Below, piece by piece: positions 1 through 28,331 of a stretch of 64,000 bases of DNA. The position numbers and the translations under genes were made by a program. Below the pieces are notes generated by a model. That model had not been told where the DNA came from and did no database searches. It saw nothing but the letters and a program-made list of their open reading frames with translations. Within the stretch, counting starts at the first letter, position 1, and the number at the start of each line of letters is the position of its first letter. The stretch covers positions 17,050,001-17,114,000 of the forward strand of contig CM106586.1 of assembly GCA_048013815.1 (NCBI GenBank). Reading direction: 5' to 3'. The stretch comes from Setoptus koraiensis (taxonomy: Eukaryota > Animalia > Arthropoda).

Positions 1-775
1 CAGGTAAGACATTCCTTCTAGCTATCAATAGAGCTATGCGATCCGACATATGCAATGTTATCCTATATATGATGTAATATATTGAGAAGTGAATGGAAAC
101 AAATATGTGACCTTCAACCACTGTATATAATGATTGGAAGAAAGATTTCCGTCCAGCAGTATAGCTGATATAAGTTCTCCAAAAGTTTATGACAACCCAT
201 ATATGAATAATATAACCATAATTCCTTGCAAATTCTTCTAGACTTTTCACAAGCTTCTTGAAGATACTTCGACTTGTCCTTTCCGCCGTTTGCTCACTGC
301 GAATTAGAGCTGATATATCGCAGCCGTCACTCTTCTTCAAGATCAAATCAAAGTAATGATAATTCAACACTCCTACCACAAATGTTGCAAAACTGTTCAC
401 GAAAAAAAAAATGTGCGGAGCAAGAATCAAGAAGCAATAACGAAACTTTTTTACTCCAGATGAGTTCTTGATTGAGCCTAAAAATATTCCTTTCGGCGAT
501 CCAGTTGCTTTGGCGACTGGATCGCCGACCATAGTGATATAAATAGTGACATAAATGAAATATCCGATCACGAGTAGTCGTAGGATTGTGTTGATTGCTA
601 GCGAATTGGTTAATTTGAGAGCACCTGTTAGTCTAAATATCAATTCGATCCAATAAATACGATCTTTCAATGTTCTTCGTGTTTCTTCATTTCTGATTTT
701 CTTCAAATTTCCAGCAACAGAAAGTTCTGGTCTCCCCTTTGAATATTCGCAATCTCGAGATTCGTCAATTGCCAT
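1..775 (-). CDS. Divergent 7-TM gustatory-receptor-like protein, copy A (5' part; runs off the left edge)
   Basis: Manual translation from ATG at 775 gives MAIDESRDCEYSKGRPELSVAGNLKKIRNEETRRTLKDRIYWIELIFRLTGALKLTNSLAIN...IYYIIYRITLHMSDRIALLIARRNVLP. It is open for 258 codons to position 1 and clearly paralogous to 2711-4000 and 4990-6330. Absent from the ORF track because there is no stop in the window. Confidence 0.85.
   Translation of the reverse strand, partial: MAIDESRDCEYSKGRPELSVAGNLKKIRNEETRRTLKDRIYWIELIFRLTGALKLTNSLAINTILRLLVIGYFIYVTIYITMVGDPVAKATGSPKGIFLGSIKNSSGVKKFRYCFLILAPHIFFFVNSFATFVVGVLNYHYFDLILKKSDGCDISALIRSEQTAERTSRSIFKKLVKSLEEFARNYGYIIHIWVVINFWRTYISYTAGRKSFFQSLYTVVEGHIFVSIHFSIYYIIYRITLHMSDRIALLIARRNVLP
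493..528. repeat. Perfect 13-bp inverted repeat (hairpin) inside copy A coding sequence
   Basis: tcggcgatccagt (493-505) and actggatcgccga (516-528) are exact reverse complements with a 10-nt spacer; not present in paralogs C or D. Confidence 0.9.
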
Positions 776-1245
776 TGTCAATCATCTATTTCTTCGTCAA
801 TTTGTGTTCTATGATATGGTAGAGATTTGAAAAGAAGGCCAAACTCAATTTCCAATCGCGGTGTGGTCGCAAGAATCACTGATGATTCTAAGGAGAATAG
901 ATTGGATTTCTCGATGTTCTATCGGAGTGCATCGACATATCTTCAATATCTTAACTTATGGACTTTGATGCACGTCCATTTCGTGTATCAAAGTATAAAT
1001 TGTACAGCCCTCGCATTTTTATCGTGTGCGCTTCGGGATTGGCTTGTCAAGATTCGGGATCAACATACATATGATCGTTTATTTCTCGTTTGATTTCTTC
1101 TATACAAACATTGCTTGACAGCTACTCTGGATATGGATAATGGTAATGAAAAATAAATTCATTACATGACAAGCGACTCCACTACACAGGTATATTTGCA
1201 CGACATTTTCTGGTAGACGGTTACGCTCAATTAAATAGTCTAGTT
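776..1245 (-). repeat. Duplicated upstream block of the receptor-like genes (homologous to about 4010-4400 and 6340-6790)
   Basis: Shared strings such as gaatagatt, tataaatt, gtcaagatt/gagatttgg. gtagacggttacgct is identical at 1213-1227 and 6760-6774. Stops interrupt the minus-strand frames checked, so it appears non-coding. Confidence 0.7.
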
Positions 1246-1450
1246 GATCACTATTCCTTGTGTTTGATGTGACATCAATTCCTAACGATAACTACATTTT
1301 CACGTGTCTCATCGGTCTAGTTGGTTTCTAGTAAGCTGTCTCGATTCTTATGATGATTTGTTATCAATTACTTCAGTGCAGAAAGGAGAGGAATAGTCGC
1401 TCGAAAATGACATTGTATTTATACCGTTACCCTGTTTAACATTTATAAAT

Positions 1451-1886
1451 AATGGATGTTCTTTACATCACGGAGATAACACGGTTGAGTAGAGATTTTC
1501 TTGATTCAAATTATTTGATTTAAATTATGATTGAAATCGTTTGGTTTGAATCAATGGTTTTAATCAATGAGAATCTAGTCACAATTGAAAATGTAATTTA
1601 AATCGTGGTTTTAATGGTCTGTAATGGTTTGATTAAAATCAACATGGTTTCAATTGAGTTTAATTCGATTTTTCCATTGCCCAGGCCTATTGAAATCACT
1701 GCGGTTGATATTAATCGCAAAAAAATCTTAGAAACCAAGATTTAAATAAAAAAAACATAACATCAACAAAGCCATTTAGACAAAAAATTCAATTTTGACC
1801 ATGACTGATTGCTTGAGCTTGCTGATTTAAATCGACAAAATCTCCACTTTAACTCCGTTATCTTCGTGATGTAAAGAACACTCATT
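1451..1886. mobile_element. MITE-like element with long imperfect terminal inverted repeats
   Basis: tgttctttacatcacg(g/a)agataac at 1457-1480 is inverted at 1857-1880, with imperfect pairing extending to about 55 bp. The interior is AT-rich and non-coding. A possible 9-bp TSD is tttataaat (1442-1450) / tttatgaat (1888-1896). Confidence 0.6.
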
Positions 1887-1889
1887 TTT

Positions 1890-2690
1890 TATGAATCACT
1901 GGGAAGACTAAACGAGTTGTTGTCTCTTTAGTCTTTGTCGGTGTTGCCACCGAAGATGAGGATACTGGCCAATAGGATGAGGGTAGATATTACATGCGTC
2001 ATTTAGACAAATATAGCCAGCGATGTTGCTGTGTTGTAATAATAGCGTTAGCAAGAGCTAACGTTTTCCCATTATTCGCAGAAGCAATGTTGATTGCAAT
2101 CGAAAGAGATAATTCTGACAACAGACTACTACAATTAGTCGTCAGATTTCGCCCCTCGTAGTCAGATGCTTGACTCATTTTTACATTGTTGAGTTATTCG
2201 GAACCATGACACTTCTCGCCACAAGTGACGATACTCAGAGGGCAATAGTCTTTTAGCGAAGGTTGGGATAGATATAAGCCAATTCATTCAGAAGTAGAGA
2301 CAATGCTTATTTATAAATTTTATAATATATTGCATAAAAATTACAAGTAATTGTGTAAACATCAGGCATCTCCGACAATGATCTGAAAATAGGTTGTTGT
2401 CCAATAACATAACGGGACAGGGACAAACAATGCAACAAATCATAGATGAACAAAATAACCGTAATCTTTTGTGGATTTCTAAGAACTACAAATCGGATTT
2501 CCAAGTGCAATTTTGACCAGCATGCAATTCGGGAAAATATTCTGCTTTCATAAAATTCTACAGTTGCGGGATAGTTGATCAAATCAGTATTATATAGAAA
2601 TGATACAAGTTTCGTGTGGATTTTTAATTGAATCACTGACACAAGGAGAGTCGGATAAATAAAAAAGTGATGACATTCATATCCTTTCAC
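1890..2690 (-). pseudogene. Degenerate receptor-like paralog, copy B
   Basis: ORF 2307-2690 ends ...RYVIGQQPIFRSLSEMPDVYTITCNFYAIYYKIYK*, aligning with GYIVGRKSLYRSLSTIPDGHIVISNHIAIYYIIYRI of copy C. There is a stop where paralogs have ATA(Ile), further stops downstream, and no N-terminal half. Extent below 2307 is tentative. Confidence 0.6.
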
Positions 2691-2710
2691 TTTGTGATGA
2701 AAATGGGCCG

Positions 2711-4000
2711 CTATGTGTAATTAAATTTGTCGACAATCCGCAGTTTTCCCACATAGGCTGATAGCTCATTCATCGTAACAACAATTGTTATAATCAATAA
2801 ATTGATAGTAATGAGTTGCCTCATACTTGGTTTGAGCCAATTCGTTGGTCCTATGCTACAGATATCTTCAACTAGACGTCTAAGTAGACGGATGTCATTC
2901 TTTTTCATCAACTCGTTAAATGCATAAGGCATTTGCTCGTTGTACGCATCTGTTGATCCAAGATGATAAGTGTTCTCCGACAGATCCAACAATAGTCGCG
3001 AATTTTCATGAATTCTCTGATATCCAAAAGTGAATATCAGCATGACAGCTATTGTTTGGGAATAATTCAACAATAGACATATGAAAACACTATGTTTTCG
3101 TGTCTCGAGGGCTTCTATGATAGTGTAGAAGCGTCTCACCATAAAAAGCACTAGATGAGTATAATTTATGAGGTAGGGTATACTAACCTGGCCTCTGATC
3201 AGTAGCATTGCATCACGAGTTTGCATGAGGGTGTCCAAAATGACTGTCATAGGAAGGACGTTTCTTCTAGCTATCAATAGAGCTATGCGATCCGACATGG
3301 CCAATGTTATCCTGTATATGATATAATATATTGCGATGTGATTACTAATAACTATATGACCGTCAGGTATTGTTGATAATGATCGGTACAAAGACTTTCG
3401 TCCAACAATATAACCGAGATAAAACCTTGGAAGCAGTACAGCAGACCAGGTATAAACTAAAACACCATATTCTCTCGCAAATCGGTGCATTCTCCCAGCG
3501 GAGTTTCTAAGGATATTGCGACTTTTCCTACCCCCCGTTCGTTCACTGTGGAGGAGAGCTAATATATCGTCTCCATCATTCTTGTTCAAGATCGAATCGA
3601 AATAATGATAATTCAACACTCCTGGCACAAATGTTGCGATATAGTTCATGAGAAGAGTGATGCTTGGAAGAATGAGCATAGTGAAATAGCGAATCATGCC
3701 AATTCCAGCCGAGTTCTTGAACGAGCTGAAATATTTTACATTCGGCAACCTAGCTTCGTTGGCGAACATACTGCAATAGATGGCATATCCGGAAATGAGT
3801 AATCGTTGGACAATGTTGATTGCTAGCGAATTGGTTAATTTGAGTGAACCTGTTAGTCTAAATATCAATTCGATCCAATAAATACGATCCTTCAATGTTC
3901 TTCGTGTTGTTTCATTTTTGATTTTCTTTGAATCGCCAGCAATGGAAATTTCCGGCCTTCTCTTTGGGCGTTCGCAATCTCGAAATTCTTTGGTGGCCAT
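2711..4000 (-). CDS. Divergent 7-TM gustatory-receptor-like protein, copy C (429 aa, intronless)
   Basis: About seven hydrophobic segments with GR-like spacing (long loop TM4-TM5; post-TM6 YQRIHENSRLLLDL). The C-terminal GPTNWLKPSMRQLITINLLIITIVVTMNEL aligns positionally with the GR TM7 TYhhhhhQF region. The ORF is certain; the GR assignment is inference. Confidence 0.7.
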   Translation of the reverse strand: MATKEFRDCERPKRRPEISIAGDSKKIKNETTRRTLKDRIYWIELIFRLTGSLKLTNSLAINIVQRLLISGYAIYCSMFANEARLPNVKYFSSFKNSAGIGMIRYFTMLILPSITLLMNYIATFVPGVLNYHYFDSILNKNDGDDILALLHSERTGGRKSRNILRNSAGRMHRFAREYGVLVYTWSAVLLPRFYLGYIVGRKSLYRSLSTIPDGHIVISNHIAIYYIIYRITLAMSDRIALLIARRNVLPMTVILDTLMQTRDAMLLIRGQVSIPYLINYTHLVLFMVRRFYTIIEALETRKHSVFICLLLNYSQTIAVMLIFTFGYQRIHENSRLLLDLSENTYHLGSTDAYNEQMPYAFNELMKKNDIRLLRRLVEDICSIGPTNWLKPSMRQLITINLLIITIVVTMNELSAYVGKLRIVDKFNYT

Positions 4001-4633
4001 TCTGAATAATCTAATTCTTTAATTTGTGCTCTACAATTCTAATTATAGTAAACATTTGAGGTCGAAACCAATGTCAACATAAAAATTCTAGCAAAAAAAT
4101 CTTGCAATTTCAACTGATTTTGTATTCACATGATTTGCTGAGAATCTCGGAAGAATAGATTAGAAGTCTCAACCTTCTATCCCAGTAAACCTGTACGTTC
4201 ATTGCGTGCAGAGAATTATAAATTATGAAGCTCATGGCTCAATATAACGTGCGCTTCGTTATTGCCTTGTCAAGATTTGGCACAAGTTTTTTGTGGGATA
4301 AGATCATTATTGGTCTATTTCTTGCTTGAATTCTTGTATCCCAACATTGATTGCCAGCTGCAATGAATATTTAGCAATCAGAGAAACACAACATACGACA
4401 ATGAAAAACTTAAACGACATATTCAGGTAGGTTTAGTCTGGATATAAACATGTAGAGCTATTACTCTAGCATAGGATTTTCGGTTGGGAGCCGAGTTTAT
4501 TCTCGCATACTGATGCCAAAGGCGCAAACCAACTTTACTCGATCAATTCAAAATGCTGAAATTGTTGTCCTACACACCCATCCTACTAAGAATGTGCTCT
4601 TCTTGTCAGCTATGGCAACATGTTACAAGGACC

Positions 4634-4993
4634 CTAAAATCTCACCACCAACGAGTGAATCTCTCGGTCCGTATGACACGCTCCGATTATAATTAGATCC
4701 TGGCCATACCAATAGGGGTACAAATATTGCGGACATTGGCACTCTGGGTGGACTGTCTCACCGTTGGCGGCTCGACGCTGCCTAGAGCCAGCCAACTGAT
4801 TTCTGTTGTGATGCAAATCACTTGTTGTTGTTGTTGTTTGCTGAATAAAATTGTTGTTGGTGTCGGCCGGTTGGTTGTTGTGACTGGAATCCGAAGCGGC
4901 CTGGTCGTTTTTGGCGATGTTGAATTGTGAGTAGAAGTTGTGCGTCATTGCTATGGGACTGATAAATACCAGGTATAAGGTGATGACATTCAT
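4634..4993 (-). CDS. Possible small secreted propeptide (119 aa, orphan)
   Basis: Hydrophobic N-terminus MNVITLYLVFISPIA, N/Q/T-rich spacer, RQRR furin-type site, then a 45-aa Cys/Tyr-containing C-terminal peptide. Its ATG overlaps the copy D stop (ATGA). Confidence 0.4.
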   Translation of the reverse strand: MNVITLYLVFISPIAMTHNFYSQFNIAKNDQAASDSSHNNQPADTNNNFIQQTTTTTSDLHHNRNQLAGSRQRRAANGETVHPECQCPQYLYPYWYGQDLIIIGACHTDREIHSLVVRF

Positions 4994-6330
4994 GTAGTCC
5001 GATTTTGTGATGAAAATGAGACGTTATGGGAAACTAAATTTTTCGACAATCTATTACCGCCCCATTTTCCCACATAGGCTGATAGCTCATTCATCGATAC
5101 AACCATTGCTATAGCTAATAAATTGAGAGTAATGAGTTGCCTCATAGTTGGTTTGAGCCAATTCGTTAGTCCGATGTTACAGACATCGTCGACTAGACGT
5201 CGAAGTAGACGAATGTCATTCTTTTTCATCAACTCGTTCAATGCAGAGGGCGTTTGCTCCAAGTAAGTCTGTAAGTAATCTGTTGTTCCGAGATAATAAT
5301 TGTTCTCTAACAGATTCAACAACAGTCGAGAATTCTCATGAATTCTCTGATATCCAACAATCACCATCATCATGAAACTTGTCGCTTGAGAATAGTTCAA
5401 CAACAGACACAAGAAAATACGATATTCCTTCTTCCAAATTGCTTCTATGATGGTGTAGAAGCGTCTCAACATGTAAAATACAGCATGAAAATAAGTTATG
5501 TACCACACTATGGTGACCTGTTTTCTGATCAGTAGCATTACATCACGAGTGTGCATAACGGTGTCCAAAATGGCTGTCATAGGCAGGACGTTTCTTCTAA
5601 CAATCAACAGAGCTATGCGATCCGACATAGACAATGTTATTCTATATATGATGTAATATATTGCGACGCTATTACAAATCAATATATGACCCTCAATTAT
5701 CGTTAATAATGATTGGAAGAAAGGTTTTCGTCTAGCAGTATAACTAATATAAAATCTTGCAAAAATTACAACAAACCATATATGAGCAAAATAGCCATGG
5801 TCTCTGGTGAGTCGGTTCATTCTTCCAGCAGAGTTTCTAAGGACACATCGACTAGTCCTGCCTGCTGTTTGTTCACTGCGGAGGTGAGCTAATATATCGT
5901 CTCCATCATTCTTGTTCAGGATCAATTCGAAGTGATGATAATTCAACACTGATACCACAAATGTTGCGACATTGGTCACGAGAATAGTAATGTTCGGAAC
6001 CACGAACATAGCAAAATATCGAATCATGTCGATTCCAGGTGAGTTTCTGAATGAGCTGTAATGCATTTCATTCCGCAACCAAACTTCTTTGGTGAAAATA
6101 TTGCAATAAATGAAATATCCGTTGATGAGTAATCGTTGGACTATGTTGATTGCTAGCGAATCCGTTAATTTGAGCGAACCTGTCAGTCTAAATAACAATT
6201 CGATCCAATAAATACGATCTTTCAATGTTCTTCGTGTTCTCTCATTCTTAACTTTTCTACAATCGCCAATACTAGAAATTCCCTGGTTTCTCTTCGGATA
6301 TTCGCAATGTCGAGACTCTTTAATCGCCAT
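4990..6330 (-). CDS. Divergent 7-TM gustatory-receptor-like protein, copy D (intronless)
   Basis: Paralog of copy C throughout. The start was set at ATG 6330 (MAIKES...) by alignment with copies A and C; the track start at 6336 is TTG. A small indel near the 3' end gives a different C-terminal tail. Confidence 0.72.
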   Translation of the reverse strand: MAIKESRHCEYPKRNQGISSIGDCRKVKNERTRRTLKDRIYWIELLFRLTGSLKLTDSLAINIVQRLLINGYFIYCNIFTKEVWLRNEMHYSSFRNSPGIDMIRYFAMFVVPNITILVTNVATFVVSVLNYHHFELILNKNDGDDILAHLRSEQTAGRTSRCVLRNSAGRMNRLTRDHGYFAHIWFVVIFARFYISYTARRKPFFQSLLTIIEGHILICNSVAIYYIIYRITLSMSDRIALLIVRRNVLPMTAILDTVMHTRDVMLLIRKQVTIVWYITYFHAVFYMLRRFYTIIEAIWKKEYRIFLCLLLNYSQATSFMMMVIVGYQRIHENSRLLLNLLENNYYLGTTDYLQTYLEQTPSALNELMKKNDIRLLRRLVDDVCNIGLTNWLKPTMRQLITLNLLAIAMVVSMNELSAYVGKWGGNRLSKNLVSHNVSFSSQNRTT

Positions 6331-7920
6331 TCTCAATCATATAATTTTTCTATAATTTTTGTTCTTTGTCTGGCTAACTCGGTTTGGTGAGGATTTTCAG
6401 GAGAGTAAACCATAAGTCTCAACCCTGTATCGCAGTGAATCTACATGCCGCCGATATTTTATGCACGTTAATTGCGTGCGTAAAAGTATAAATTGTATAC
6501 CCCTGGATCAATATTGAGTTCGCTACAGGATCGACCCATCGAGATTTGGGACAAGCGTACATGTGATGAGAGCAGTAATGCGTTGTTGTTAGATCTTGTT
6601 AGATTTCCCCGATTCTAGCATTGATTTTCAGCTATCTTCAATGTTGAGAAGCGAGAGAAACGCAGCATACGGATTCGAAAAATAGATTTCAGACTCAAAA
6701 ATAGATCACGAGACAAGCGAACACTCCACAGGTTTATATTTTGTGCAATGTTTTTTTTTGTAGACGGTTACGCTTAATCGAATAGTCTTTTCATAACTAT
6801 TTTTTAGGCTATAATCAGTTGGAATCTTTTGTACCTGGAAAGGAGGTTTACCTTGTAAGCGCAATTTTCCGTATCATCAACCATTCAATAGTTGATAAAC
6901 ATTGAGAAAAACCGGAAGAACTTGAATTGATCAAGCATCTACCGGTTTACGTCATATTTCTCTTCCTTCTTATCAGCCATGAATATATAGATGAAGTGTC
7001 ATGGCCAATAAGAAAGTAGATAAATATGACATTACCCGGTAAATGCTTGATCACTCCAAGTTATTCGGGTTTTTCTCAATATTTATTAACTATTGACGTC
7101 AAGTTTTTCGGCTATACAATTCAATGTTAATAAACCATTTGATAGTTAATGTTAACGGAGAGAAAATGGCGATCGAGGAAGCAAAGTCTGAAAATGGCTC
7201 TATCGTAAAGAAAAATTGTATTAAAAAAAATAATTGTATGGATGGGGTCCGCTTGCTCGAATGACACTTATTGGCTAGATAGCTGCTTGTCAAGCTTGGC
7301 ACATGGAGGCACTATGACGTGGGCGCGATGAGTGCACTGGGCATGCTCGCGAGATGTATCCATCGAGACGCTGGTGTAAACATGACTTCTTACAATGGCA
7401 AGCACGAATGTATCGCCTTATTCGCGAGTCGCGACAATTATTTATAACACAAAAGCAAATCATATGTTGTGTATTTGCTCTGTTGTCGGAGCACCCCCTA
7501 TGACTCACTCAAAAGTATGCACTCAAAAGACACTTGAACATTTGTGTGACATATTTGCCGTAATTGTTGGCCAAGATAAAACTGTATTATCAAGATCATT
7601 GTATTGTCAAGTCAATTATTATCAAGATACTTGTGCCCGATAAACAGCACAAATGGGACTGTGTCAATAAGGACAAACCAATGGATGGAAACGACTCTCA
7701 ACGTCTCTCTGCCTCTAATCTAATTGAAATTAGTTAATTAGGATAATCAGCAAGATTGTGTGAACGATCTCCTGTTTCGGACATTATGAGGCGCAGGTAA
7801 TTATGATAAATAAATTGGCACGTTTTGTTGTGCATCCCGAGCTGGCCTGTTGGGCGCCATCGGACAGTTAGCGGCCAGAAGACAGGCAGTTGATGATTAT
7901 TGTTCGCTCATTTACTCATC

Positions 7921-7976
7921 TCTTACAGTAAGAGTCTTACTGTAAGAGTCTTACTGTAAGAGTCTTACTGTAAGAG
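7921..7976. repeat. 14-bp tandem repeat x4 with double dyad symmetry
   Basis: tcttac(a/t)gtaagag repeated four times; both cttac-N-gtaag and gtaaga-N-tcttac are palindromic. Confidence 0.95.
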
Positions 7977-8791: not shown

Positions 8792-11700
8792 ATGGAGCAC
8801 AGCTACAAGTTGATAAACAACAATGGGCCCAACAGTCCGGAGTCCATCTATGATAAGGCGAGCTTCTTTTCGCGATACGCATTCTGTTACATGCTGCCGT
8901 TGTTTAGCGGAGCCTTCAAGAGGGACATCGGCATGGACGACATTGGTGCGCCGCCCCGCGAGGACAAATCCAAGCGGCTGGGCATGAGACTGCAGCAAGC
9001 GTGGCAGCAGGAACTTTTAACCAAGGACGATCCGAGTTTTACGCGGGCCCTAATTGCGGTGTTCGGCTGGAAATTGGCCCGCTTGGCCGTGTGGGATTTC
9101 ATCAGCAAATGCATCGCCTATCCGCTGCAAGCGGTCACATTGGGCTGGCTCATTCGGGCCATCGGCGAGTACCTGATGGAAACTAATGCCCCCGCAGCGG
9201 CCATAGTTATTGTGGCAAACCCGGTCAACGCTACGCTCAACGCTACGCTCAACGCGACGCCCGTCGCGGCCATCGCCGCGCCCGTCGCAACAATCAATTT
9301 AGGCGTGGGCGTCGAAGACAACTCGGCACAGGCCTTCGCCAAGCTGTTCAACAACGTACTGTTGTGCACAACACTGCTGATACTGGCCACCATGTTGGCC
9401 GTTGTCACGTCGCATCCGTTCTTTTTTGGCTGTTACCATTTGGGCATGAAGGTGCGCATAGCGTCCTGTTACGTCATCTACAAAAAGTCGCTGCGTCTCA
9501 GCCAGGCGGCCCTGTCCAAGACAACGGTGGGCCAAATGGTGAATCTGTTGTCCAACGACGTCAACCGCTTTGACCAGGCCATCACCATGATCCCGTACCT
9601 GGTTATGGCGCCCGCTCAGGCGCTGGTCATGCTGGGCCTGTTGGCCAGCTTCTATTTGGGCGTTTATCCCACACTGGCCGCGCTGGCCACCATTCTGTCC
9701 TACGTGGCCCTGCAAACGTTAATGGGGGGCTGTTTTGGCCGATTGCGCCTAAAAACGGCCCGTCGCACCGACGAACGGGTGCGCCTAATGAACGAGATAG
9801 TGTCCTCAATCCGGGTCATCAAGATGTACTGCTGGGAGAGATCGTTTGAGCGGCTTGTGACGGAGGCGCGCGAGCGCGAGGTCAGTTGCATCGCAAAAAC
9901 GGCCGCCCTTCGCACCGTCAACACGTCGCTGTTTTTCGTCTCGTCCAAGGTGATTGTGTTCGTGGCCCTCATCACCTACATATCGCTGGGCTACACGTTC
10001 ACGCCCGAGAACGTGTTCGTCTCAATAGCGCTCTCCAATCTGGTGCGCGTCAGCCTGACGCTGTTCTTTCCCAACGCGGTGGCGCAAACCGCCGAGACGC
10101 TCATCTCGTGCCAGCGCATAAAGGTGAGTGTATAATAACTGTAATGTGTAACTGCAACACGCAATGCCCAGAGTTTTTAACAATTGATCAACTTTTGACA
10201 ATTAATCAACTTTTAACAACTAATCAACTTTTAACAATTAATCAACTTTCGGCAATTTGCGCCGCGCAGGACTTTCTGCTGCTGCCCGAAATGGACCGGT
10301 CGCCGGCCGCGCGGCGCACCTCCAACGACTCGGTCGGCTGCAAGTACGTGATCGAGCTGACGCGCGTCACCGCCACCTGGGAGCCCAATCTGGCCAACAG
10401 CTCGTACACGGTCGAGTCTATGCAAAACGCCAACGACCCGAGCCCCGCCTACGCCAACAACCTGTGCCCGGCCGTTCTCAGGGGCCTCAGTATGGCCGTG
10501 AAGCGCCGCGACCTGGTGCTGATCGTGGGCCGCGTGGGCAGCGGCAAAAGCTCGGTACTCATGTCCATGCTGGGCGAGCTGCCCATATCGAGCGGCCGCC
10601 TCGAGATCAACGGGCGTCTGTCGTACGCCTCTCAAGAGCCGTGGATTTTCTCTGGCACGGTGCGCGAAAACGTGCTCTTCGGCAAGGAGTATCACGCCAT
10701 CCGCTACAAGGAGGTAATGCGAGTATGCAATCTAGAGCGCGACATGGAGCTGTTGCCCGAGGCCGACCGCTCCATTGTGGGCGAGCGCGGCGTGTCGCTC
10801 AGCGGCGGCCAAAAGGCCCGCGTCAATCTGGCGCGCGCCCTCTATTACGACGCGGACATTTATCTGCTGGACGATCCGCTGTCGGCCGTGGACGCGTCCG
10901 TGGCCAAGCACATATTCAACAATTGCCTCAAGACATTCCTCAAGAAGAAAACCGTTGTGCTGGCCACGCATCAGCTCCAATTTCTCAGCTACGCCACCAA
11001 GGTGCTCGTGGTCGACAACACGCTGCCCGCGGCCTTCGGCACCCTCCAGGAGGTGATGGCCTCGAAGGCGTTCGAAGAGGTCAACTACAGCCGCGAGGCG
11101 TTCGAGGACGCCACCACCACCACCGCAACGGAGGGCCCCAACGACGAAAGTGACACAGGCTCGCAGGCGGACGCCACGGGCCGGCTGCGCAGCGGCTCGC
11201 AATTGGGCCAACTGTTGAACTTGCAGCCCAAAGCGGACGCGACGCTCATAGACGCCGACCGCAGCGGACCCAGCAGCTCGGAGGCCTCGGCGTCTCCCGA
11301 GGGCTCGGGCTCTCGCTCGGGCTCCCGCTCGAGCCAGTCCAACGCGGGCCAACAAATAAGCGAGGCCGTGGGCAAGATTCAAGAGAAAGACGACCGGAAG
11401 CCGGCAAGTGGGCGCCTCTTTCAGACGCAGCTCTCGTCAAATCTGAAGCTGTCGTTGTCGCCGCAAAAGAAAAAGAAAAAATCCCAAAATCTCGTTCTGG
11501 ATCCGGCGCTCACAACGAGCGACATCGTGTCTAGAAAGCCGCACCCAAAGAAGCAAGCGGGCGCCTCGAGCTCGCAGAGGCGCGGCGGCGAAAAGCTGAG
11601 CAAAATCTCTGCCGACATGTCCACATACTTGTACTATCTGTCCAACGCTGCCGGATGTTTGCTTTTCACCTGGTTCGTGCTGGCCAACTTTGTTAGTCAG

Positions 11701-13509
11701 TCGCTGTTTCATTCCACTGATTTCTGGCTGAGCTTTTGGACGGACTCGGAGCAGCGCAAGGCCATGGCCGAGCCGGCCGACAGTTTCGTGCCCGTAACAC
11801 TGATCGACCGCATGACGTTGAGCCAGATAACCGTCGTGTACGCGGGCCTAGTCTTGTCGGTGTTTGTGGCGTCGTTTCTGCGAACCGGAACACACTATTA
11901 CGGCTGCCTGCGGGCCTCCATCAACATGCACAACAAACTGTTCTCGAGCATCCTTCGGGCGCCCATGATATTCTTTGATTTTAGCCCGATAGGAATACTG
12001 CTGAATCGCATATCGCGCGACACTGGCTTCGTGGACGATCAACTGCCCACGACCGCGATGGAAATCGTCACCATATTTGTCAATGTGTTTGGCATCATCA
12101 TTGTCACGCTCATCATAAACTATTGGAACATCATACCGGCCATCATACTACTGGCGATAGCCTTCTCGTTGCGTCACTACAGCGCCCGAACCGTGCGCCG
12201 GCTAAAACAAATCGAGGGTGTCGCCAGAAGTCCCATATTTTCGCATCTGGCCAACACCCTGTCGGGCATCAGCACCATTAGAGCGTTCACAGTGCAAGAG
12301 GACTTCTTGAAACAATTTGACGACTATCAGGACACCCACTCGAGCGCCTGGTTTTTGTACATAGCCTCGGGTCGCTGGTTGACGGTGGCCATGGACTGGC
12401 TGTGTCTGTTTTTCATAACGTCGCTTGTGAGCATGGTGCTACTGACCCAATTGACCTCAACCAACGCCAGCCTCATGGGTCTGCTCGTGACGCAGGCCAT
12501 CATGCTGCCGGGGCCCTTCCAGTGGGGCATGCGACAACTGACCGAGCTGGAGAGCCAGATGACCTCGGTGCAGCGCATCAAAGAGTACAGCCAGTTGGAG
12601 TCGGAACAGAAGCCGGACTCGGGCCACTCGTCCGCAAACAAAAACTCGCCAACAACTGTTGCTGTGAGCTCCGGGCCAAAGTTTACGCCCGCTGAGGGCG
12701 AGATCATGTTCTGTGGTGTGTCGTTGAGATATTTCAAAGAAGAGGAGCCCGTCCTGAAGAATCTCAATTTTCACATTCGGCCCAGCGAGAAGGTGGGCAT
12801 AGTGGGCAGAACGGGAGCGGGCAAATCGAGCATAATGGCGCTACTGTTTCGTTTGTACGACTTCGATGGCGCCATACTCATCGATTCCGTCGACACTAAA
12901 TCAATGCCACTGACAGAGCTGCGACCCTGCATTAGTATCATACCCCAGGATCCGGTCCTATTCAGCGGATCCATCAGAAAGAATCTGGATCCGTTCAACG
13001 AGTTCACCGATCTCGATCTGTGGCGCGCGCTTAAGGCCGTCAGATTGGATCTGGTGTTCAGACAGTACAATCAACAGTTGGACTATGTCATCAATGAGGG
13101 CGGCAGCAATTTCAGTATCGGCCAGAGGCAATTGATTTGTTTGGCGCGAGCCATAGTGAGAAGAAACAAGATTTTAGTTTTGGACGAGGCCACTGCCAAT
13201 GTTGATCCAGAAACGGACACGTTCATACAGAAAACTATCAGAGATCAGTTTAACGATTGCACCGTTCTCACCATAGCCCATAGGCTCATAACTGTGATGG
13301 ATTCCGACAGAGTGCTAGTGCTGGACGCTGGCCAGGTAAGAGAGTTCGACGAACCATATAAATTGTTGCAAAACGAAAATGGTCTGCTCACTAGAATGAC
13401 CAAAAATAGCGGCCATCAGGCGGACAGATTGTACAGGATAGCCAAGACGGCGCATTTGGACAGATTGAAGCAACAGGGCCTGCCTGAGGTGATCGACCAG
13501 CAGCCATAG
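8792..13509 (+). CDS. ABCC4-like: ABC transporter subfamily C (MRP4-like, no TMD0), 2 exons: 8792-10123, 10270-13509 (about 1523 aa)
   Basis: TMD1 motifs (MVNLLSNDVNRFD, RVRLMNEIVSSIRVIKMYCWE); NBD1 GRVGSGKS/LSGGQ/YLLDD; NBD2 GRTGAGKS/FSIGQ/LVLDE. Phase-0 intron AAG|gtgagt...gcgcag|GAC (10124-10269) joins the two track ORFs in frame. Confidence 0.95.
10175..10257 (+). repeat. 18-bp minisatellite (about 4.6 copies) within the ABCC intron
   Basis: tttt(a/g)acaa(t/c)t(a/g)atcaac units start at 10175, 10193, 10211, 10229, with a partial unit at 10247. Confidence 0.92.
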
Positions 13510-21464: not shown

Positions 21465-22196
21465 CCGTGGCTCATTTTAGACTACATACACATAAACACA
21501 CAGGTAATTATTAAGAAACAAATTCGTAGCCTTGCATCGGATCAATTAGACGGCCAGAACGTGCCCGGGTGGGCGCCCCACAACCGGCCTGGCCGCTGTG
21601 TCGCTGCTGATGTTACGCAACCCACTTGCCACCTGAGCGCTCTCTTTTTATCGGATATTAGGCAGAGGTATTAAATGGCGAATGGGCCCATAAACTAGTA
21701 CAAATGCTCTCTCGTGCGTAACTCTCTCTCTCTCTCTCTCTCTCCCTCTGTCTCTCTGCTGGCTGTGCGGCAATTTTTGTCGCAACGCAACATATCCGTT
21801 AACTTGGCCACCATCAACTGGGCCAATTGTCTCCTGGAGCCAGTGGGGCCCGCACTGGGCCACTGGCGAGGCGCAACAGCAAGCACTGCGGTAACGCTCG
21901 ATGACCGTAGCTTGCCGAGCCTGACCATCGCGGTGGCCTCAGTGTTTTGCATATTGCAAATCTTGCTCTGCCAGCGTCTGTGTCTCGCTGTGCGTTATTT
22001 AATTTGTCGACTGTTAAAAAGGGTTCCTGTTTTGTAGTGAGAGTTACCTCTTCAGTGCCCACACGAACTATTTATTTTGTTTTATTTGTGTGCAAGCGTG
22101 AAAATATCGCCCCCGAGTCAAATCAAGCAAAGCGAATAAATATAACTTAATAAGACCGTAGATAAGCGCCGGTCGAGCTCATAAGTGCCCAAAACA

Positions 22197-25100
22197 ATGA
22201 CGCTGAAACAATCAAACAACAGAGGTGCCGCTCGCACAACAATGTCCATGCAAATCTACGGGGGCGCCTATTTGCACAATAAGCCACTCGAGGCGCAAAA
22301 TATGGCCAATGTCAACAATGGTGTCGGTTTGCCAAATCTAAAGAGTTCGTTGTCGTCCACTCCGCTGGTGGACGACGTGTCCGCTTTGGCCTCAATGAAC
22401 ACCAATCCGAAGGAGCGATTGGGCCCCGTCAACGGCTCCAAGCCGGTCGCCGCCCGAGATGACGACACCAACAAGCCGGCGAGGACGGCCAAACACACCA
22501 AATTCAAGCTGGAGGCCAGCACAATTGAGTTTGGCAACGGCGATGTCAATCGATCTTCGCGCTCAGTTGCAAGCAAGCAACGAACAATATTAAAAAATAG
22601 CAACACGAGGCCGGCCAAACCGGAAGCGGTCATTTTGGACATTGAGCCCATAAGTGAGCCAGCGGCAGGTGCCGCCACCAGTGAGGGCCAACAACTCGAT
22701 AGTAGCAACGGCAGAAGTGTCGCCAACAAGACAACAACAGCGACAATTAGCGACAACGGTAGTGATAACAATGATAACAGCAGTGAGCCAATGATTAAGC
22801 CGGCGCGAGCGCCCCCATTGCCCGATTACGCAAGCAGCAACAGTGGCGGCGCCAGTGGCGCCAACAACAATTATCAGCAATCGTCTGGGGATCATCAGAG
22901 CAACGGAAATGGCAGCAGAGCCGCCAGTCCCATAGCGCACACAGATTATCTCATTAGCGATCCGAACATTTTGAATCAGGTGACAACAAACGGAAATTTG
23001 CGCTTGATAGCCAATCAAGACGGAGTGCTGATGGTGCCCGCCAAGTTAAAAAATGGCTCTACAGGCAGCTCGGGCAACAGCCTGGCGTCGCCGGCCACTT
23101 CCGGTTCGGCAAGCATCGATATGGGCACGGGCCAGGAGCTTGCGTTGGCCGAGTTGGCCGCAAGCTCCAACGAAAACTTCGACTACATGATACCCATCGA
23201 GAGGCGCCTGAGCGGAATGGTCAGTCCCGTGGATGCAAGCTCAATGTTTAAATTGGCGCCACCGGGCGCCATTGTCACCAAGGCGACCGCCAAAGAGAAA
23301 ACGGAACTGGCCAAGCAATTGCTAAACGCGTGCCGGCATTCCGACTGGACAATTGTGGAGCAAATATTGAACTTTGCCCGCCTGTACGGCATAGACACCG
23401 AGCTGACCAGCGAGGGAACCCGCTGGACGGCCATAATGTATGCGGCGCGCGACAATCGGGCCATGATAGTGGAGAAAATGATCAATTTGGGCCTCGACAT
23501 CAACAATCAGGCACTGGACGGCATAAGTGCGTTGCATTTGGCGTGCGCGTTTGCCCGCGAAGAGACCATCCGCGTGCTGCTGTCGGGCAACGCGGACACC
23601 CTGATCAGGGGCGGGCCGCGCGACCAGTTGCCCATACACATACTGGCCTCGAAGGCCAGCAGCAATGTGGTGGCCGCGCTGCAGTTGCTGCTCAAGGCCG
23701 GCCCGGCCAGCAGCCGGCTGGAGACGGACGCCGACGGAAACATACCGCTGATGCTGGCCGTGGGCACGGGCAATCTGGAGGTGATTTGCGAGCTGCTGCA
23801 ACAGTCCGCCAAGGAGCAGCTGCTGTGGAAGAGGCCCCCCGACGACAACAGCGCCCTCCATTTGGCGTGCATGAACAAAAACATTGACATCATCAAGATA
23901 TTCATAGAGCACAATGTCAATTTGAACATGCAAAACAAGCTCAACAAGACCGCGCTTCATCTGGCCACCGAGGACGAGAACGAGCCCATTGTGCGGCTGT
24001 TGTGCGCCGCGGGCGCGGATCCCGACGTCATGGACAAGGAGCACCAGACCCCGATACACATAGCGACGGCGCGCAGCTACCACAAACTGGTGGACATTTT
24101 GTCCGAAAAGTTCAAGGCGTCCATTATGAGCCGCACAAAGGACGGCTCGACGCTGATGCATTTGGCCAGCAACGCGTACAACAGCCAGGCCGCTATGGCT
24201 TTTATCCGCAAGGGCATACCCATTCACATGCCCAACAAGGCGGGCGCCAAGTGCATACACATGGCCTCCATACGGGGGCACGTTGAGGTGGTGAAGGCCA
24301 TAGTGGCCAAGGGCGAGAGCGTGGACTGTCGCACCAAGGACGGCCTGACGCCGCTCCATCTGGCGGTCAAGTTCGGCCAGCACGACGTGGTGGAGACGCT
24401 GCTCGGGTTGGGGGCCAATCTGCAGCTGAAGACGGGCAAGCTGGGCGAGACGCCGCTGCACATAGCGACCATGGTGAAGGACGGACAAAAGTGTGTGGAT
24501 TTGCTGATAAAGTCGGGCGCGGACGTGGACGCGGTAGAGCTGAAACAGGAAACGCCGTTGCATTTTGCGGCCCGCTTCAACAACATCGAAGCGGTGAAGC
24601 TGCTGCTGGAGGACGGCGCCAAAGTGGACTGCCAGAACGTGGACGGCGAAAACGTGTTGCACGTGTGCGTTCGCGAGTCCAACAGGCTCATTATGGACGT
24701 TATATTGGCGCACGTGATAGAGAACAGGACACCGGAAGAGGCCAAATTGTTGATAAATCAGCAGAATAAGGATGGCGAAAGTTCGTGCCACTATGCGGCC
24801 AAGCTGACCATAAGTGACAGCAACTTTGCAGAGGATCGTGAAATCATTAAATTGCTGCTGCGCCACCAAGCGGACGTGTCGCTGGAAACGTTTAAGCAGC
24901 GCGAGACGCCCGTACATTGCTGCTGTCAATCGGGCAACACCAACGTACTGCAAGAGATACAGGCCCACTTGGAGCCCGCCGACTGTCGGGTAGCGTTCAA
25001 CAAACCCGCCAAGAACGGCTGGACGCCGCTGTTTTACGCCGCCTACCAGGGTCACCCGGACATCATCAGGGTACTGCTGAACCAGAACGCGCGCAACGAC

Positions 25101-28100
25101 GCCTTCGACGAGAACGGCGAATCGCCGCTGCACGTGGCAGTGGAACGCGGCAAGGAGGACGTGGTGGACATTTTGTTGCAGCACAACGCCAATGTGAACG
25201 TGCGCAACAAGCTTGGCATGACGCCCCTCCATCTGGCGGCCAAGCTCGGCTTTAACAGCATAGTGCGCCAATTGGTGTCGGAGCACGGGGCCATTTTGGA
25301 CGCCATGACCGTAAGCAAGCAAACGCCGCTCCATCTGGCGTCCGAGTACGGCCAATTCGAGGTATGCAAGACCCTAATGAAGTTGCGCGCCGACCTCAAC
25401 GCGGCCGACAACCAAAGCCAGACGCCCGTCCATTTGGCCGCCCAGCAAAATCACGCCGAGGTACTAAAGCTGTTCCTGAACGACCGCTCCGAGCTGCTCA
25501 CCATACCCAACAAAATGGGGTACAATTGTGCCCACATTGCGGCCATGAACGGCAGTTTGTCGGTCATCAAGGAGCTGCTGCGCTTCAACCGGGACGCGGT
25601 CATCGGGGTGCGCATCAAGAAGACGGGCTCCACTACGCTGCATCTGGCCAGCGAGGGCGGTCACGCCTCCATTGTGAAGCTGCTGCTGTCCGCGGGCGCC
25701 AAGGCCAGCGACGAGAACGCGCTGGGCGAGACCGCGCTTCATTTGGCCGCAAAGCACGGCCACGTAAAGGTGCTGCACACCATCAAGACCGCCGTTGATT
25801 GGAAGATTTGTTCGCGGCGCAACGGGTTGACCGCGTTGCACGTGGCGGCCAGTTGCGGTCAGATGGAGTTTGTGGGCGAAATGTTGCGGTACCGCGTGCC
25901 GGGCGGCATCAAGAGCGAGCGGTCGGGCGTGGACCCAAAGTCGGACTATGGCGTCACTCCGCTGCATTTGGCGTCGCGAAACGGCCACGAGAGCGTGGTG
26001 CGCATGCTGCTCAACAGCGCGGGCGTCACGGTGGACGCCGCCACCGAAATAAATCGCTCCATACCGATGCATTTGGCCGCGCAGGGCGGCCACGTCAAGG
26101 TGGCCAGCCTGCTCATCAGCCGCTCGCTGGACAGTCTCATCAAGACGGACGGGCACGGGCGGACCGCGTTGCACTTTGCGGCCAGTCACGGGCACAACGA
26201 AATGGTTGAGCTGCTGCTGGGTCAGGGCGGCCCGGATCGCATGAACGCCCAGGATGATCGCGGCTGGACGCCGCTGCACTATGCGGCCCGGCACGGGTAT
26301 TTGGACGTGGTGAAGCTGCTCATTGAGCACGGCGCCGATCCGACCATGTGCAGCAAGGAGGGCAAGGTGCCGCTGTGCAACGCTGCCAACGCCGGCCACA
26401 AACAAGTGCTCAGCTACCTGTTGAAGAAGGATCACGACTCGCTAGAGCTGATGGAAAACAAACTGTTCCTCATAGACCTGATGCTGTGCTCTAAGCTCAA
26501 GAGCAACTCCAGCAATTCGGGCCAGCAGCAGCAGCAATCGACTTCCGGTCACCATCACCAGCAAGCCGGGGCGGCAACCGGAAGTGCACAGCAACAGTCA
26601 CAGTGGCAGCAGGCCAGCGATCAGATGGGCGGCAACAGGAACACGGTCAGCGGCGACTATCTGCCCATTCAGGAGTTTATATTGGTGAGCGAGGCTCCCA
26701 TTGACACAGCGGTGAAATTGGCAAAATATTACGAGAATCTGGTGGAAAAAGAAAAAGATCGCTCAAAGGATCTCGAGTGGGCCAAGGACTTTTGCGACCA
26801 AGTGGCCACCGATTTGCTATCTATAACGGCCAGCGGACTGCCCAACAACGCCAGTGCCCTGCTGCGGGCCCGCGACTACAAGAACACGGAATTTCTGGAC
26901 GTGTTGCTCGAATTGGAACGCAAGGACGTCGTGTCGCAACACGCCGTCCAAAAGTATCTGTCCAGCGTGTGGGCCGGCAATCTCAATTGGTCCGGCTGGA
27001 AATTCATAATGCTGTTCTTCGTCTTTCTCCTATGTCCGCCCGTTTGGGTAGTGGTGTCCTGCCCCATTGGGCACCGGCTCGCCAAGATACCCGTCATCAA
27101 GTTTATGTCGTATTTGGCCTCGCACATATTCTTCATAGTGCTCCTATGCATGACCACCGTCTTTGTGCCCACCTGGATACCCCTGTGGCTGTGCACCGAC
27201 ATGGTACCCCTGGCCCACGAGTGGCTGCTGGCCATCTGGTTCCTGGGCAACCTCATCTCTAACATGTCCAATCCGGCCGATCGGGCCGGTTTTGGCAGCA
27301 TCAAACTGATGGTCATGGTCATCGGTTTTGGCTCCTTCATTACGCACTGCAGCGGATTTTTGTTTCCCGAGGAGGACAGTCGCGTCGAATTGCTGTATTT
27401 GCGCAATCAAATGCTGGCCGTCGTTGTCCTACTGTCATTCATTGAATTCTTGAATTTTCTATCATTTCATCACCTGTTTGGACCGTGGGCCGTCATCATC
27501 AGGGATCTAGTGAAGGATATGATGCGATTTTTAGTGATATTGGGCATTTTTCTCATAGGTTTCTCGCTTTCCATCAGCGCCATATATGTGCCCGTGTTCA
27601 AGCCGCCCGAGGACGAAAACGCCACCCTCATATCGACCGGAATAGAGTTTCAATCGCCCGTATTCACATTCGAAATGCTCTTCTTTTCCCTGTTCGGTCT
27701 GGTGGAGCCCGACTTTATGCCACCCATGCACCTGAGTCCCTCCTATTCGAAGGTGTTCATGAAGCTCGTGTTTGGCATATACATGATGATCACTGTCGTA
27801 GTGCTCATAAATCTGCTCATTGCCATGATGTCTAACACGTATCAGCGCATTGAGGCCCGTTCTGACACAGAATGGAAATTTGGCAGGGCAAAATTAATTC
27901 GAAACATGATAAGGACCTCGCCAACGCCGTCGCCGCTCATTCTGTTTGTTGGCATATGGATTATATTGTTCAAGAAATTGCGCGAGCGTCAATTTGAGAA
28001 GCGCAAAAGAGAAAAAATGGCCGTTTCCGCCTTCAACCGGAAGGCAAGTGTGTCGACGGCCGCCTCAAAAGCGGCCAATGTATGGCTGAATAAATCGGCC

Positions 28101-28331
28101 CGATTTTCACGGGGCACTATTTCGCCCTCGTTCGGTGGCCACTCGCAACCGTCCGTGATCAATGTTGAAGTGGGCGAAGATGTTAAAAAATTAAGCGAAG
28201 TTGTCAATTGGGCCAACATAGTGAGAAAATACGGCGAGTTTGTGGGCGTCAATCAAAAAGACGACCAAGACTACGAGGAGGACGAAGAAAACAATCGCCA
28301 AGACAAGGACGAAACCACCGTGGCCGCCTGA
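22197..28331 (+). CDS. nompC: TRPN mechanotransduction channel NompC, single exon (about 2044 aa from ATG 22197)
   Basis: Very long ankyrin-repeat array followed by six TM segments; S6 VLINLLIAMMSNTYQRI and TRP box EWKFGR match TRPN. The track start at 22185 is GTG. Confidence 0.96.
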   Translation: MTLKQSNNRGAARTTMSMQIYGGAYLHNKPLEAQNMANVNNGVGLPNLKSSLSSTPLVDDVSALASMNTNPKERLGPVNGSKPVAARDDDTNKPARTAKHTKFKLEASTIEFGNGDVNRSSRSVASKQRTILKNSNTRPAKPEAVILDIEPISEPAAGAATSEGQQLDSSNGRSVANKTTTATISDNGSDNNDNSSEPMIKPARAPPLPDYASSNSGGASGANNNYQQSSGDHQSNGNGSRAASPIAHTDYLISDPNILNQVTTNGNLRLIANQDGVLMVPAKLKNGSTGSSGNSLASPATSGSASIDMGTGQELALAELAASSNENFDYMIPIERRLSGMVSPVDASSMFKLAPPGAIVTKATAKEKTELAKQLLNACRHSDWTIVEQILNFARLYGIDTELTSEGTRWTAIMYAARDNRAMIVEKMINLGLDINNQALDGISALHLACAFAREETIRVLLSGNADTLIRGGPRDQLPIHILASKASSNVVAALQLLLKAGPASSRLETDADGNIPLMLAVGTGNLEVICELLQQSAKEQLLWKRPPDDNSALHLACMNKNIDIIKIFIEHNVNLNMQNKLNKTALHLATEDENEPIVRLLCAAGADPDVMDKEHQTPIHIATARSYHKLVDILSEKFKASIMSRTKDGSTLMHLASNAYNSQAAMAFIRKGIPIHMPNKAGAKCIHMASIRGHVEVVKAIVAKGESVDCRTKDGLTPLHLAVKFGQHDVVETLLGLGANLQLKTGKLGETPLHIATMVKDGQKCVDLLIKSGADVDAVELKQETPLHFAARFNNIEAVKLLLEDGAKVDCQNVDGENVLHVCVRESNRLIMDVILAHVIENRTPEEAKLLINQQNKDGESSCHYAAKLTISDSNFAEDREIIKLLLRHQADVSLETFKQRETPVHCCCQSGNTNVLQEIQAHLEPADCRVAFNKPAKNGWTPLFYAAYQGHPDIIRVLLNQNARNDAFDENGESPLHVAVERGKEDVVDILLQHNANVNVRNKLGMTPLHLAAKLGFNSIVRQLVSEHGAILDAMTVSKQTPLHLASEYGQFEVCKTLMKLRADLNAADNQSQTPVHLAAQQNHAEVLKLFLNDRSELLTIPNKMGYNCAHIAAMNGSLSVIKELLRFNRDAVIGVRIKKTGSTTLHLASEGGHASIVKLLLSAGAKASDENALGETALHLAAKHGHVKVLHTIKTAVDWKICSRRNGLTALHVAASCGQMEFVGEMLRYRVPGGIKSERSGVDPKSDYGVTPLHLASRNGHESVVRMLLNSAGVTVDAATEINRSIPMHLAAQGGHVKVASLLISRSLDSLIKTDGHGRTALHFAASHGHNEMVELLLGQGGPDRMNAQDDRGWTPLHYAARHGYLDVVKLLIEHGADPTMCSKEGKVPLCNAANAGHKQVLSYLLKKDHDSLELMENKLFLIDLMLCSKLKSNSSNSGQQQQQSTSGHHHQQAGAATGSAQQQSQWQQASDQMGGNRNTVSGDYLPIQEFILVSEAPIDTAVKLAKYYENLVEKEKDRSKDLEWAKDFCDQVATDLLSITASGLPNNASALLRARDYKNTEFLDVLLELERKDVVSQHAVQKYLSSVWAGNLNWSGWKFIMLFFVFLLCPPVWVVVSCPIGHRLAKIPVIKFMSYLASHIFFIVLLCMTTVFVPTWIPLWLCTDMVPLAHEWLLAIWFLGNLISNMSNPADRAGFGSIKLMVMVIGFGSFITHCSGFLFPEEDSRVELLYLRNQMLAVVVLLSFIEFLNFLSFHHLFGPWAVIIRDLVKDMMRFLVILGIFLIGFSLSISAIYVPVFKPPEDENATLISTGIEFQSPVFTFEMLFFSLFGLVEPDFMPPMHLSPSYSKVFMKLVFGIYMMITVVVLINLLIAMMSNTYQRIEARSDTEWKFGRAKLIRNMIRTSPTPSPLILFVGIWIILFKKLRERQFEKRKREKMAVSAFNRKASVSTAASKAANVWLNKSARFSRGTISPSFGGHSQPSVINVEVGEDVKKLSEVVNWANIVRKYGEFVGVNQKDDQDYEEDEENNRQDKDETTVAA

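Follow-up and report, generated by a model that had tools for sequence, protein, structure and literature searches.

The window analysed here is a stretch of 64,000 nucleotides (nt) from the genome of Setoptus koraiensis (contig CM106586.1; G000:C2:17050001-17114000), and window positions given below are counted from its first letter. It opens with a tandem array of genes that are predicted to encode a sequence-cryptic branch of the seven-transmembrane ion channel (7TMIC) superfamily, which comprises the insect gustatory receptors (GRs) and odorant receptors (ORs) and the GR-like proteins. Within the first 6.4 kb, the minus strand carries four related units. Two of them are intact, intronless genes. 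Copy C (2711..4000, minus strand, stop codon at 2711-2713) encodes a predicted 7TMIC subunit of 429 amino acids (aa), and copy D (4990..6336, minus strand) encodes 446 aa from an ATG at 6330, or 448 aa from the TTG start at 6336 of the listed open reading frame (ORF). The two proteins are 66% identical over 422 residues and the DNA is 79% identical over 1391 nt, and the DNA similarity extends beyond the coding region for approximately 30 nt on the upstream side and 47 nt on the downstream side before it dies out. Unit 4 (locus L005; 2..781, minus strand) is represented by its first ~260 codons, which share 56% identity with residues 1-250 of C and D in tblastn and are cut by the left window edge; the full gene is a 451-aa ORF (G000:C2:17049489-17050775) that extends 511 nt to the left of the window. 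The remaining unit (2295..2505, minus strand), detected by tblastn and three-frame translation, corresponds to family residues ~166-237, from the end of transmembrane helix 3 (TM3) to TM4. This unit is split over two frames with stop codons, which identifies it as a piece of a pseudogene. An earlier note on this DNA, made from the sequence without database searches, had described two full units, one partial unit at the edge and one pseudogene, and the ORFs, the tblastn matches and the frame translations bear out this description.

The family genes have no introns, as the earlier note had also stated, and each single ORF is collinear end to end with its paralogs and with the family member P0001. 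The single-ORF state is by itself little informative, because the genes around the array in the window likewise consist of long single ORFs. In copy C, similarity to the DNA of D runs past the stop codon, and three-frame translation against D locates a frameshifted tail at 2664..2735 (minus strand). A 1-nt frameshift directly after SAYVGK replaces the usual tail, the ancestral form of which can still be read in another frame; C thus ends early, with the last helical segment (TM7b) intact. The new short tail of C happens to finish in an N-Y-T sequon. Blastn self-comparison and three-way alignment further revealed a conserved non-coding block upstream of unit 4 (969..1134), of C (4192..4370) and of D (6461..6567), all on the minus strand. 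These blocks, which lie ~200–350 nt before the starts of the three array genes, remain alignable, whereas the other spacer sequence has diverged, and their invariant runs include AATTTATA and GAAGCG. The blocks are candidates for shared promoter or 5´ untranslated region elements.

A six-frame search of the genome returned 22 matching places, and the family amounts to approximately 10 intact genes plus fragments. The units in the window belong to one minus-strand array of six units (C2:17040745-17056330), in which four (L002, L005, C and D) have uninterrupted ORFs. Unit 1 (locus L013), 8.3 kb to the left of the window, is broken by an insert of ~85 nt (G000:C2:17041575-17041661), whose first bases are GTAAGT and whose 3´ end is a pyrimidine run followed by CAG. 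A frame-by-frame reading indicates that excision of the insert would preserve the receptor frame, and the insert is possibly an intron. The sole break in unit 3 (locus L009) is a frameshift within a run of ten T (G000:C2:17047169-17047174), which could be either a real pseudogenizing change or a homopolymer error of the assembly. Five full-length copies (L004, L006, L008, L011 and L012) are dispersed over both contigs, and a truncated copy (L007) and several fragments are further remnants of the family. In the maximum-likelihood tree, L012 groups with P0002, which comes from another sample (support 99/100), P0001 and L011 form separate old branches, and a recent clade (support 100/99) unites seven genes, among them every array member tested.

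The array genes are under selection. The pairwise ratio of nonsynonymous to synonymous substitution rates (dN/dS) is 0.51–0.53 among C, D and L002 and 0.16–0.33 between these genes and L011 or L012. When neutral substitution was simulated on C, the frame was still open in 0.4% of the replicates at 10% divergence per lineage and in none at 20%. C and D differ at 21% of their nucleotides and both frames are open, which is so rare under the neutral simulation that the frames must have been kept by selection rather than by chance. Constraint on the array genes is nevertheless relaxed, as is usual for young receptor duplicates.

The first structural model, built from 11 sequences, is weak (mean predicted local distance difference test score, pLDDT, 59.5), and its top 16 Foldseek matches are all GR or OR chains. 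The model from an alignment of 43 sequences reaches a pLDDT of 83.1 and a predicted template modelling score (pTM) of 0.83. It contains seven membrane helices, where the earlier note had counted about seven hydrophobic segments, and the seventh helix is split in two. TM4 (residues 210-244), TM5 (residues 251-299) and TM6 (residues 303-351) are long (35–49 residues each, pLDDT ~90), as in the anchor domain of the 7TMICs. TM7 consists of TM7a (residues 358-382), a break (residues 383-392) and TM7b (residues 393-427), which is aligned to S7b of BmGr9 through residue 444-446. The packing of the seven helices in the model is of the 7TMIC type seen in the solved GR, OR and Orco structures.

This assignment was evaluated by a structural comparison of the model with all 48,161 Protein Data Bank (PDB) representatives and by a second, Foldseek-seeded comparison. 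Among all PDB representatives, BmGr9 scores 24.6 (337 residues, 3.8 Å), followed by Gr43a (24.4), MhOR5 (23.1), AaOR10 (22.2), AgOR28 (21.7), the ApOR5-Orco complex (21.1) and Gr64a (19.9), and the first unrelated chain scores 9.6. In the Foldseek-seeded comparison, Gr43a (I418A, with fructose) scores 24.8, Orco (6c70) scores 21.9 and the best G-protein-coupled receptor (GPCR) scores 7.2 with a root-mean-square deviation of 6.7 Å. The comparison with Orco, MhOR5 and BmGr9 that the earlier note had proposed therefore recovers the 7TMIC fold, and together with the tandem array these best matches support its suggestion of a cryptic GR-like expansion. The language-model features of the family point in the same direction, with ‘Gustatory receptor’, 7tm_7, Trehalose_recp and DUF267 as the nearest Atlas clusters (scores 0.94–0.96).

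The orientation of the family model is inherited from the structural alignment. Indirect indicators of topology come from the sequences: the N-terminal 40 residues contain 13 K/R, a signal-like segment is absent, K/R are abundant in the cytoplasmic loops, and an N-x-T/S sequon is placed 4 residues from the C-terminus in eight of the nine paralogs, with a second one at -11 in six of the nine. These indicators fit a C-terminus that is lumenal or extracellular and, with seven helices, an N-terminus that would be cytoplasmic; such an arrangement would be the one expected of 7TMICs and the reverse of that in GPCRs.

The TM7 pore motif had been placed by the earlier note at TIVVTMNEL in C and AMVVSMNEL in D. 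Both are exact translations, of 2762..2788 (minus strand; residues 405-413 of C) and 5083..5109 (minus strand), respectively; the position in C follows from the end points of the structural alignments and that in D from the family alignment. The structural aligner gives only the first and last aligned residues, and the register assumes no gap within the last helix. The end-point offsets are constant across 13 structural alignments: five BmGr9 entries give +31 (413/444, 414/445, 415/446), three Gr43a entries give +9, two MhOR5 entries give +55, and Orco 6c70 gives +60, as do the Orco-numbered chains 8v02_A and 8v00_A. The BmGr9 and Gr43a offsets are 22 apart, which agrees with the published equivalence of I440 and I418 (PMC11100771). 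The constant offsets define one register, in which residues 405-413 of C lie on 436-TYLVILIQF-444 of BmGr9.

In BmGr9, T436 contributes a ring of hydroxyls to the pore, Y437 touches a pore-penetrating lipid, I440 and F444 constitute a double hydrophobic gate, and Q443 turns into the pore upon opening (PMC11100771). The equivalent residues of C are T405, I406, T409, L413 and E412, for T436, Y437, I440, F444 and Q443, respectively. Across the family, Thr is mostly retained at the T436 position, with Ala in D; the Y437 position carries I, M, F, L or T; Thr or Ser occupies the I440 position throughout; and most members have Leu at the F444 position, as Orco does (L473). At the Q443 position, Q is found in L004, L006, L011, L012, P0001, P0002 and every remote relative whose sequence includes TM7, but E in five of the nine paralogs (C, D, L002, L005 and L008). 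Because the distant relatives keep T-F/I/L-x5-Q-L, the glutamate at the gate position is derived, by a one-nucleotide change. Its distribution in the family, with Q in L004 and in L006, the sister of L005, requires more than one change or a reversal. The canonical GR signature TYhhhhhQF is not present in C or D, where T alone is kept, and in C only. The family-level reduced form T-F/I/L-x5-Q-L/F is present and, as a recognisable GR signature, argues for GR ancestry.

A word-indexed search of 5.8 billion proteins with C as the query retrieved only two relatives, both from Logan assemblies without a name; the same search with the 43-sequence alignment brought no additions, and no relative is named in any source. 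The full profile search gave 38 matches at E ≤ 1e-3, all of which, where looked up, are unnamed and found in Logan only; most are 450–720 aa long. These matches cover only the C-terminal third of the profile (positions ~230-433, TM5–TM7). The remote relatives share the motif R-L-A-x-D-I-x-x-L-W-P-T-D-W-F-x-P-D, followed by N-x-F-V-I-T-F-V-A-T-L-Q-Q-L-V-E-A. Three of them occupy separate loci amid intronless housekeeping genes in a single sample. The serine hydroxymethyltransferase (SHMT) of the organism in that sample is 80% identical to that of this genome, whereas the receptor family shows only ~15–21% identity, which indicates that the family diverges very fast.

Our best explanation, to which we assign a probability of roughly 0.8, is that the C/D family is a sequence-cryptic, lineage-restricted and fast-evolving branch of the 7TMICs, with a chemosensory role as ligand-gated channels that is proposed by analogy. 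A number of results weigh against it. No link to the GRs exists at the level of sequence, so homology rests on the predicted structure, a short motif and the language-model features. With the Pfam model 7tm_7 (PF08395, curated threshold 26.6 bits), no match was obtained at E ≤ 10 for C, D, L011, L012, P0001, P0002 and four remote relatives, or at E ≤ 1 for ten further remote relatives, in line with the expectation of the earlier note that standard GR models would miss these genes. Pfam scans of C, D, six other family members and 14 remote relatives returned no GR, OR or other confident family and no 7tm_6 signal. The family profile has no real match among the PDB sequences, so that neither source yielded a confident hit to another family; a 23-residue match to adiponectin (E 0.5) was rejected as chance. 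With hhalign, in comparisons of shallow profiles, the 43-sequence profile found no match in the three-sequence GR group of locus L024 (probability 0.1), one member of which carries PF08395; against the single GR-like ORF of locus L025 the result was likewise negative, with the TM7 motif as the sole aligned stretch and not significant. The hydrophobic segments are only moderately hydrophobic and contain conserved charged residues. The array dN/dS of ~0.5 is high, and some copies may be drifting toward loss. Moreover, some 7TMICs, such as GrlHz and PHTF, are not known as chemoreceptors.

In the alternative that survives best, the fold is truly that of a 7TMIC and the proteins serve another function. 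They could act as scaffolds or as channels with housekeeping or internal roles, which has been proposed for GrlHz or PHTF, or as light or temperature sensors like some GRs. The fold alone assigns no function, the family is small, and the N-terminal S0 and the TM4 to intracellular loop 2 (IL2) regions are strongly conserved among the paralogs, more than might be expected for purely ligand-diversifying genes. We nevertheless consider this alternative unlikely, since tandem duplication, pseudogene fragments, relaxed dN/dS and fast divergence resemble environment-facing receptors and not housekeeping genes, and since the identity to relatives is so low in a species with a closely similar SHMT.

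A second alternative is an unrelated, new family of membrane proteins whose predicted structure converges on the GR/OR fold, or is drawn to it by AlphaFold. The missing profile-level similarity to any GR or OR family and the small size of the model alignment, at only 43 sequences, could be read in its favour; given the large gap between the GR/OR chains and the first unrelated chain, we regard it as very improbable. That the copies in the window are decaying pseudogenes that are still open by chance is hardly credible: the elevated dN/dS, the frameshifted tail of C, the lost motif threonine of D and the frameshifted or fragmented neighbouring units would agree with decay, yet C, D, L002 and L005 are all open where ~0.4% of neutral sequences stay open, dN/dS is clearly <1 in every pair, and the frameshift of C falls beyond TM7b, with the channel core unbroken.

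On the 7TMIC interpretation, the proteins are most likely subunits of ligand-gated cation channels for chemosensation. If the family resembles BmGr9, Gr43a, MhOR5 and Orco in this respect, one channel would be assembled from four subunits. The ligand pocket would lie in the variable N-terminal helices TM1–TM4, and the long cytoplasmic extensions of TM4–TM6 together with TM7a would form the anchor that holds the tetramer. TM7b would line the pore, where in C the T405 side chains would provide the hydroxyl ring, T409 would sit at the hydrophobic gate, E412 would swing into the open pore and L413 would act as the outer plug. Birth and death of genes shape the family: copies arise by tandem duplication and decay by frameshift and fragmentation, in the manner of chemoreceptor repertoires.

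When the whole genome was scanned in six frames with PF08395, two loci only were detected, at 24.5 and 24.1 bits, just below the threshold. One of them, L024 (G000:C2:8511030-8511641; 635-aa ORF), scores 23.6 bits as a protein, a 40%-identical relative of it carries PF08395, and its TM7 reads TFSVMFIGE; in the other, L025 (G000:C1:17962326-17962826), TM7 reads TFSVMIIQL. These two near-threshold 7tm_7 loci parallel the two GRs of the eriophyoid Aculops lycopersici, the only ones recovered there by exhaustive BLAST mining (PMC7738191).

A second tandem array (G000:C2:18566881-18602707, L049-L052) is located 1.45 Mb beyond the window and consists of ten plus-strand single-ORF genes of 516–601 aa, most of which encode proteins that end in the shared motif ...LQGYW.PI..LS..AA.VHSKVI.... 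Its Atlas features are weakly GR-like (0.88–0.90, including a DUF3537 cluster). Membership of this array in the C/D family was rejected, as the hmmsearch scores are ≤2 bits with all filters off.

A bolder proposal is that the main taste or smell repertoire of a group of miniaturised, intron-poor mites, which are thought to be nearly devoid of GRs, is provided by the C/D family instead of the two near-canonical GRs, and that its pore also works differently: four glutamates encircling the pore in place of the gating glutamine, together with polar Thr/Ser where BmGr9 has the inner hydrophobic gate, would alter selectivity or gating, for instance toward a Ca2+-preferring, proton- or divalent-blocked or partly leaky channel. 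We regard this combination as tentative and, on balance, doubtful.

Beyond the array, the window contains genes of ordinary animal type, mostly long single ORFs: an ABCC transporter, a Tudor/LOTUS gene, a NompC-like TRPN channel, an ankyrin gene, a Src-type kinase, a BTAF1-like SNF2 ATPase and an aldehyde dehydrogenase. Two self-reverse-complement stretches, 6885-7096 (218 nt, 80%) and 7920-7976 (57 nt, 91%), are palindromic or hairpin-forming and sit in the interval that separates the receptor array from the ABCC gene. The ABCC-type transporter (8792-13509, plus strand) spans two overlapping frames (8792-10135 and 9886-13509), with an intron or a frameshift possible. A single ORF of 2048 codons (22185-28331, plus strand) contains a long array of ankyrin repeats followed by an Ion_trans domain and represents an intronless gene for a NompC/TRPN-like mechanosensory channel. 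A 2658-codon ORF (33198-41174, minus strand) has ankyrin repeats near its N-terminus; this region is 63–64% GC with a strong AT skew (-0.26 to -0.39), compared with 36–45% GC around it.

Chemoreceptor counts serve the argument that miniaturised specialist mites nearly gave up chemosensation. Here, approximately 10 genes with a confident GR/OR predicted fold, in addition to the two near-threshold loci, escape all sequence models, and related multi-copy families occur in at least one other compact, intron-poor genome. Sequence searches thus probably undercount the chemical sensors of this small, intron-poor genome. If the genes are expressed in sensilla, repertoire sizes would be underestimated and structure-based screens would be needed outside insects as well. 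The Q/E polymorphism among close paralogs would offer a natural series on the role of the gating residue in 7TMIC pores.

Compared with the fructose-clade GRs (BmGr9 and Drosophila Gr43a; 7tm_7), the family shows ~10% identity without a hidden Markov model (HMM) or hhalign signal, and it has a specific linker between TM7a and TM7b, GPTNW here and WPTDW in the remote relatives. Relative to BmGr9, I440 is replaced by Thr/Ser and F444 by Leu, and Q443 by Glu in the five paralogs named above. The ancestral phase-0 introns of the GRs are absent from the family genes. The annotated GRs of chelicerates (Tetranychus urticae, Metaseiulus occidentalis and Aculops lycopersici) would share with the family both the animal group and the presumed role; they were found by BLAST or InterPro, whereas the family studied here was not. 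In comparison with Orco and the ORs (6C70; MhOR5, 7LIC), the family lacks a 7tm_6 signal. As far as we are aware, ORs are restricted to insects, and there is accordingly no evidence for an obligatory co-receptor arrangement in this family. A close parallel is provided by the Drosophila Grls and other cryptic 7TMICs, which are likewise taxon-restricted, invisible to GR and OR sequence models, recognised by their predicted fold and sometimes arranged in tandem. These proteins emerged from structure screens, and fast divergence from GR ancestors was proposed for them (Benton and Himmel, 2023; PMC9998090). The C/D family is comparable to the Drosophila Grls, with the added interest of a genome type thought to be nearly GR-less, a natural Q/E polymorphism and a polar inner gate.

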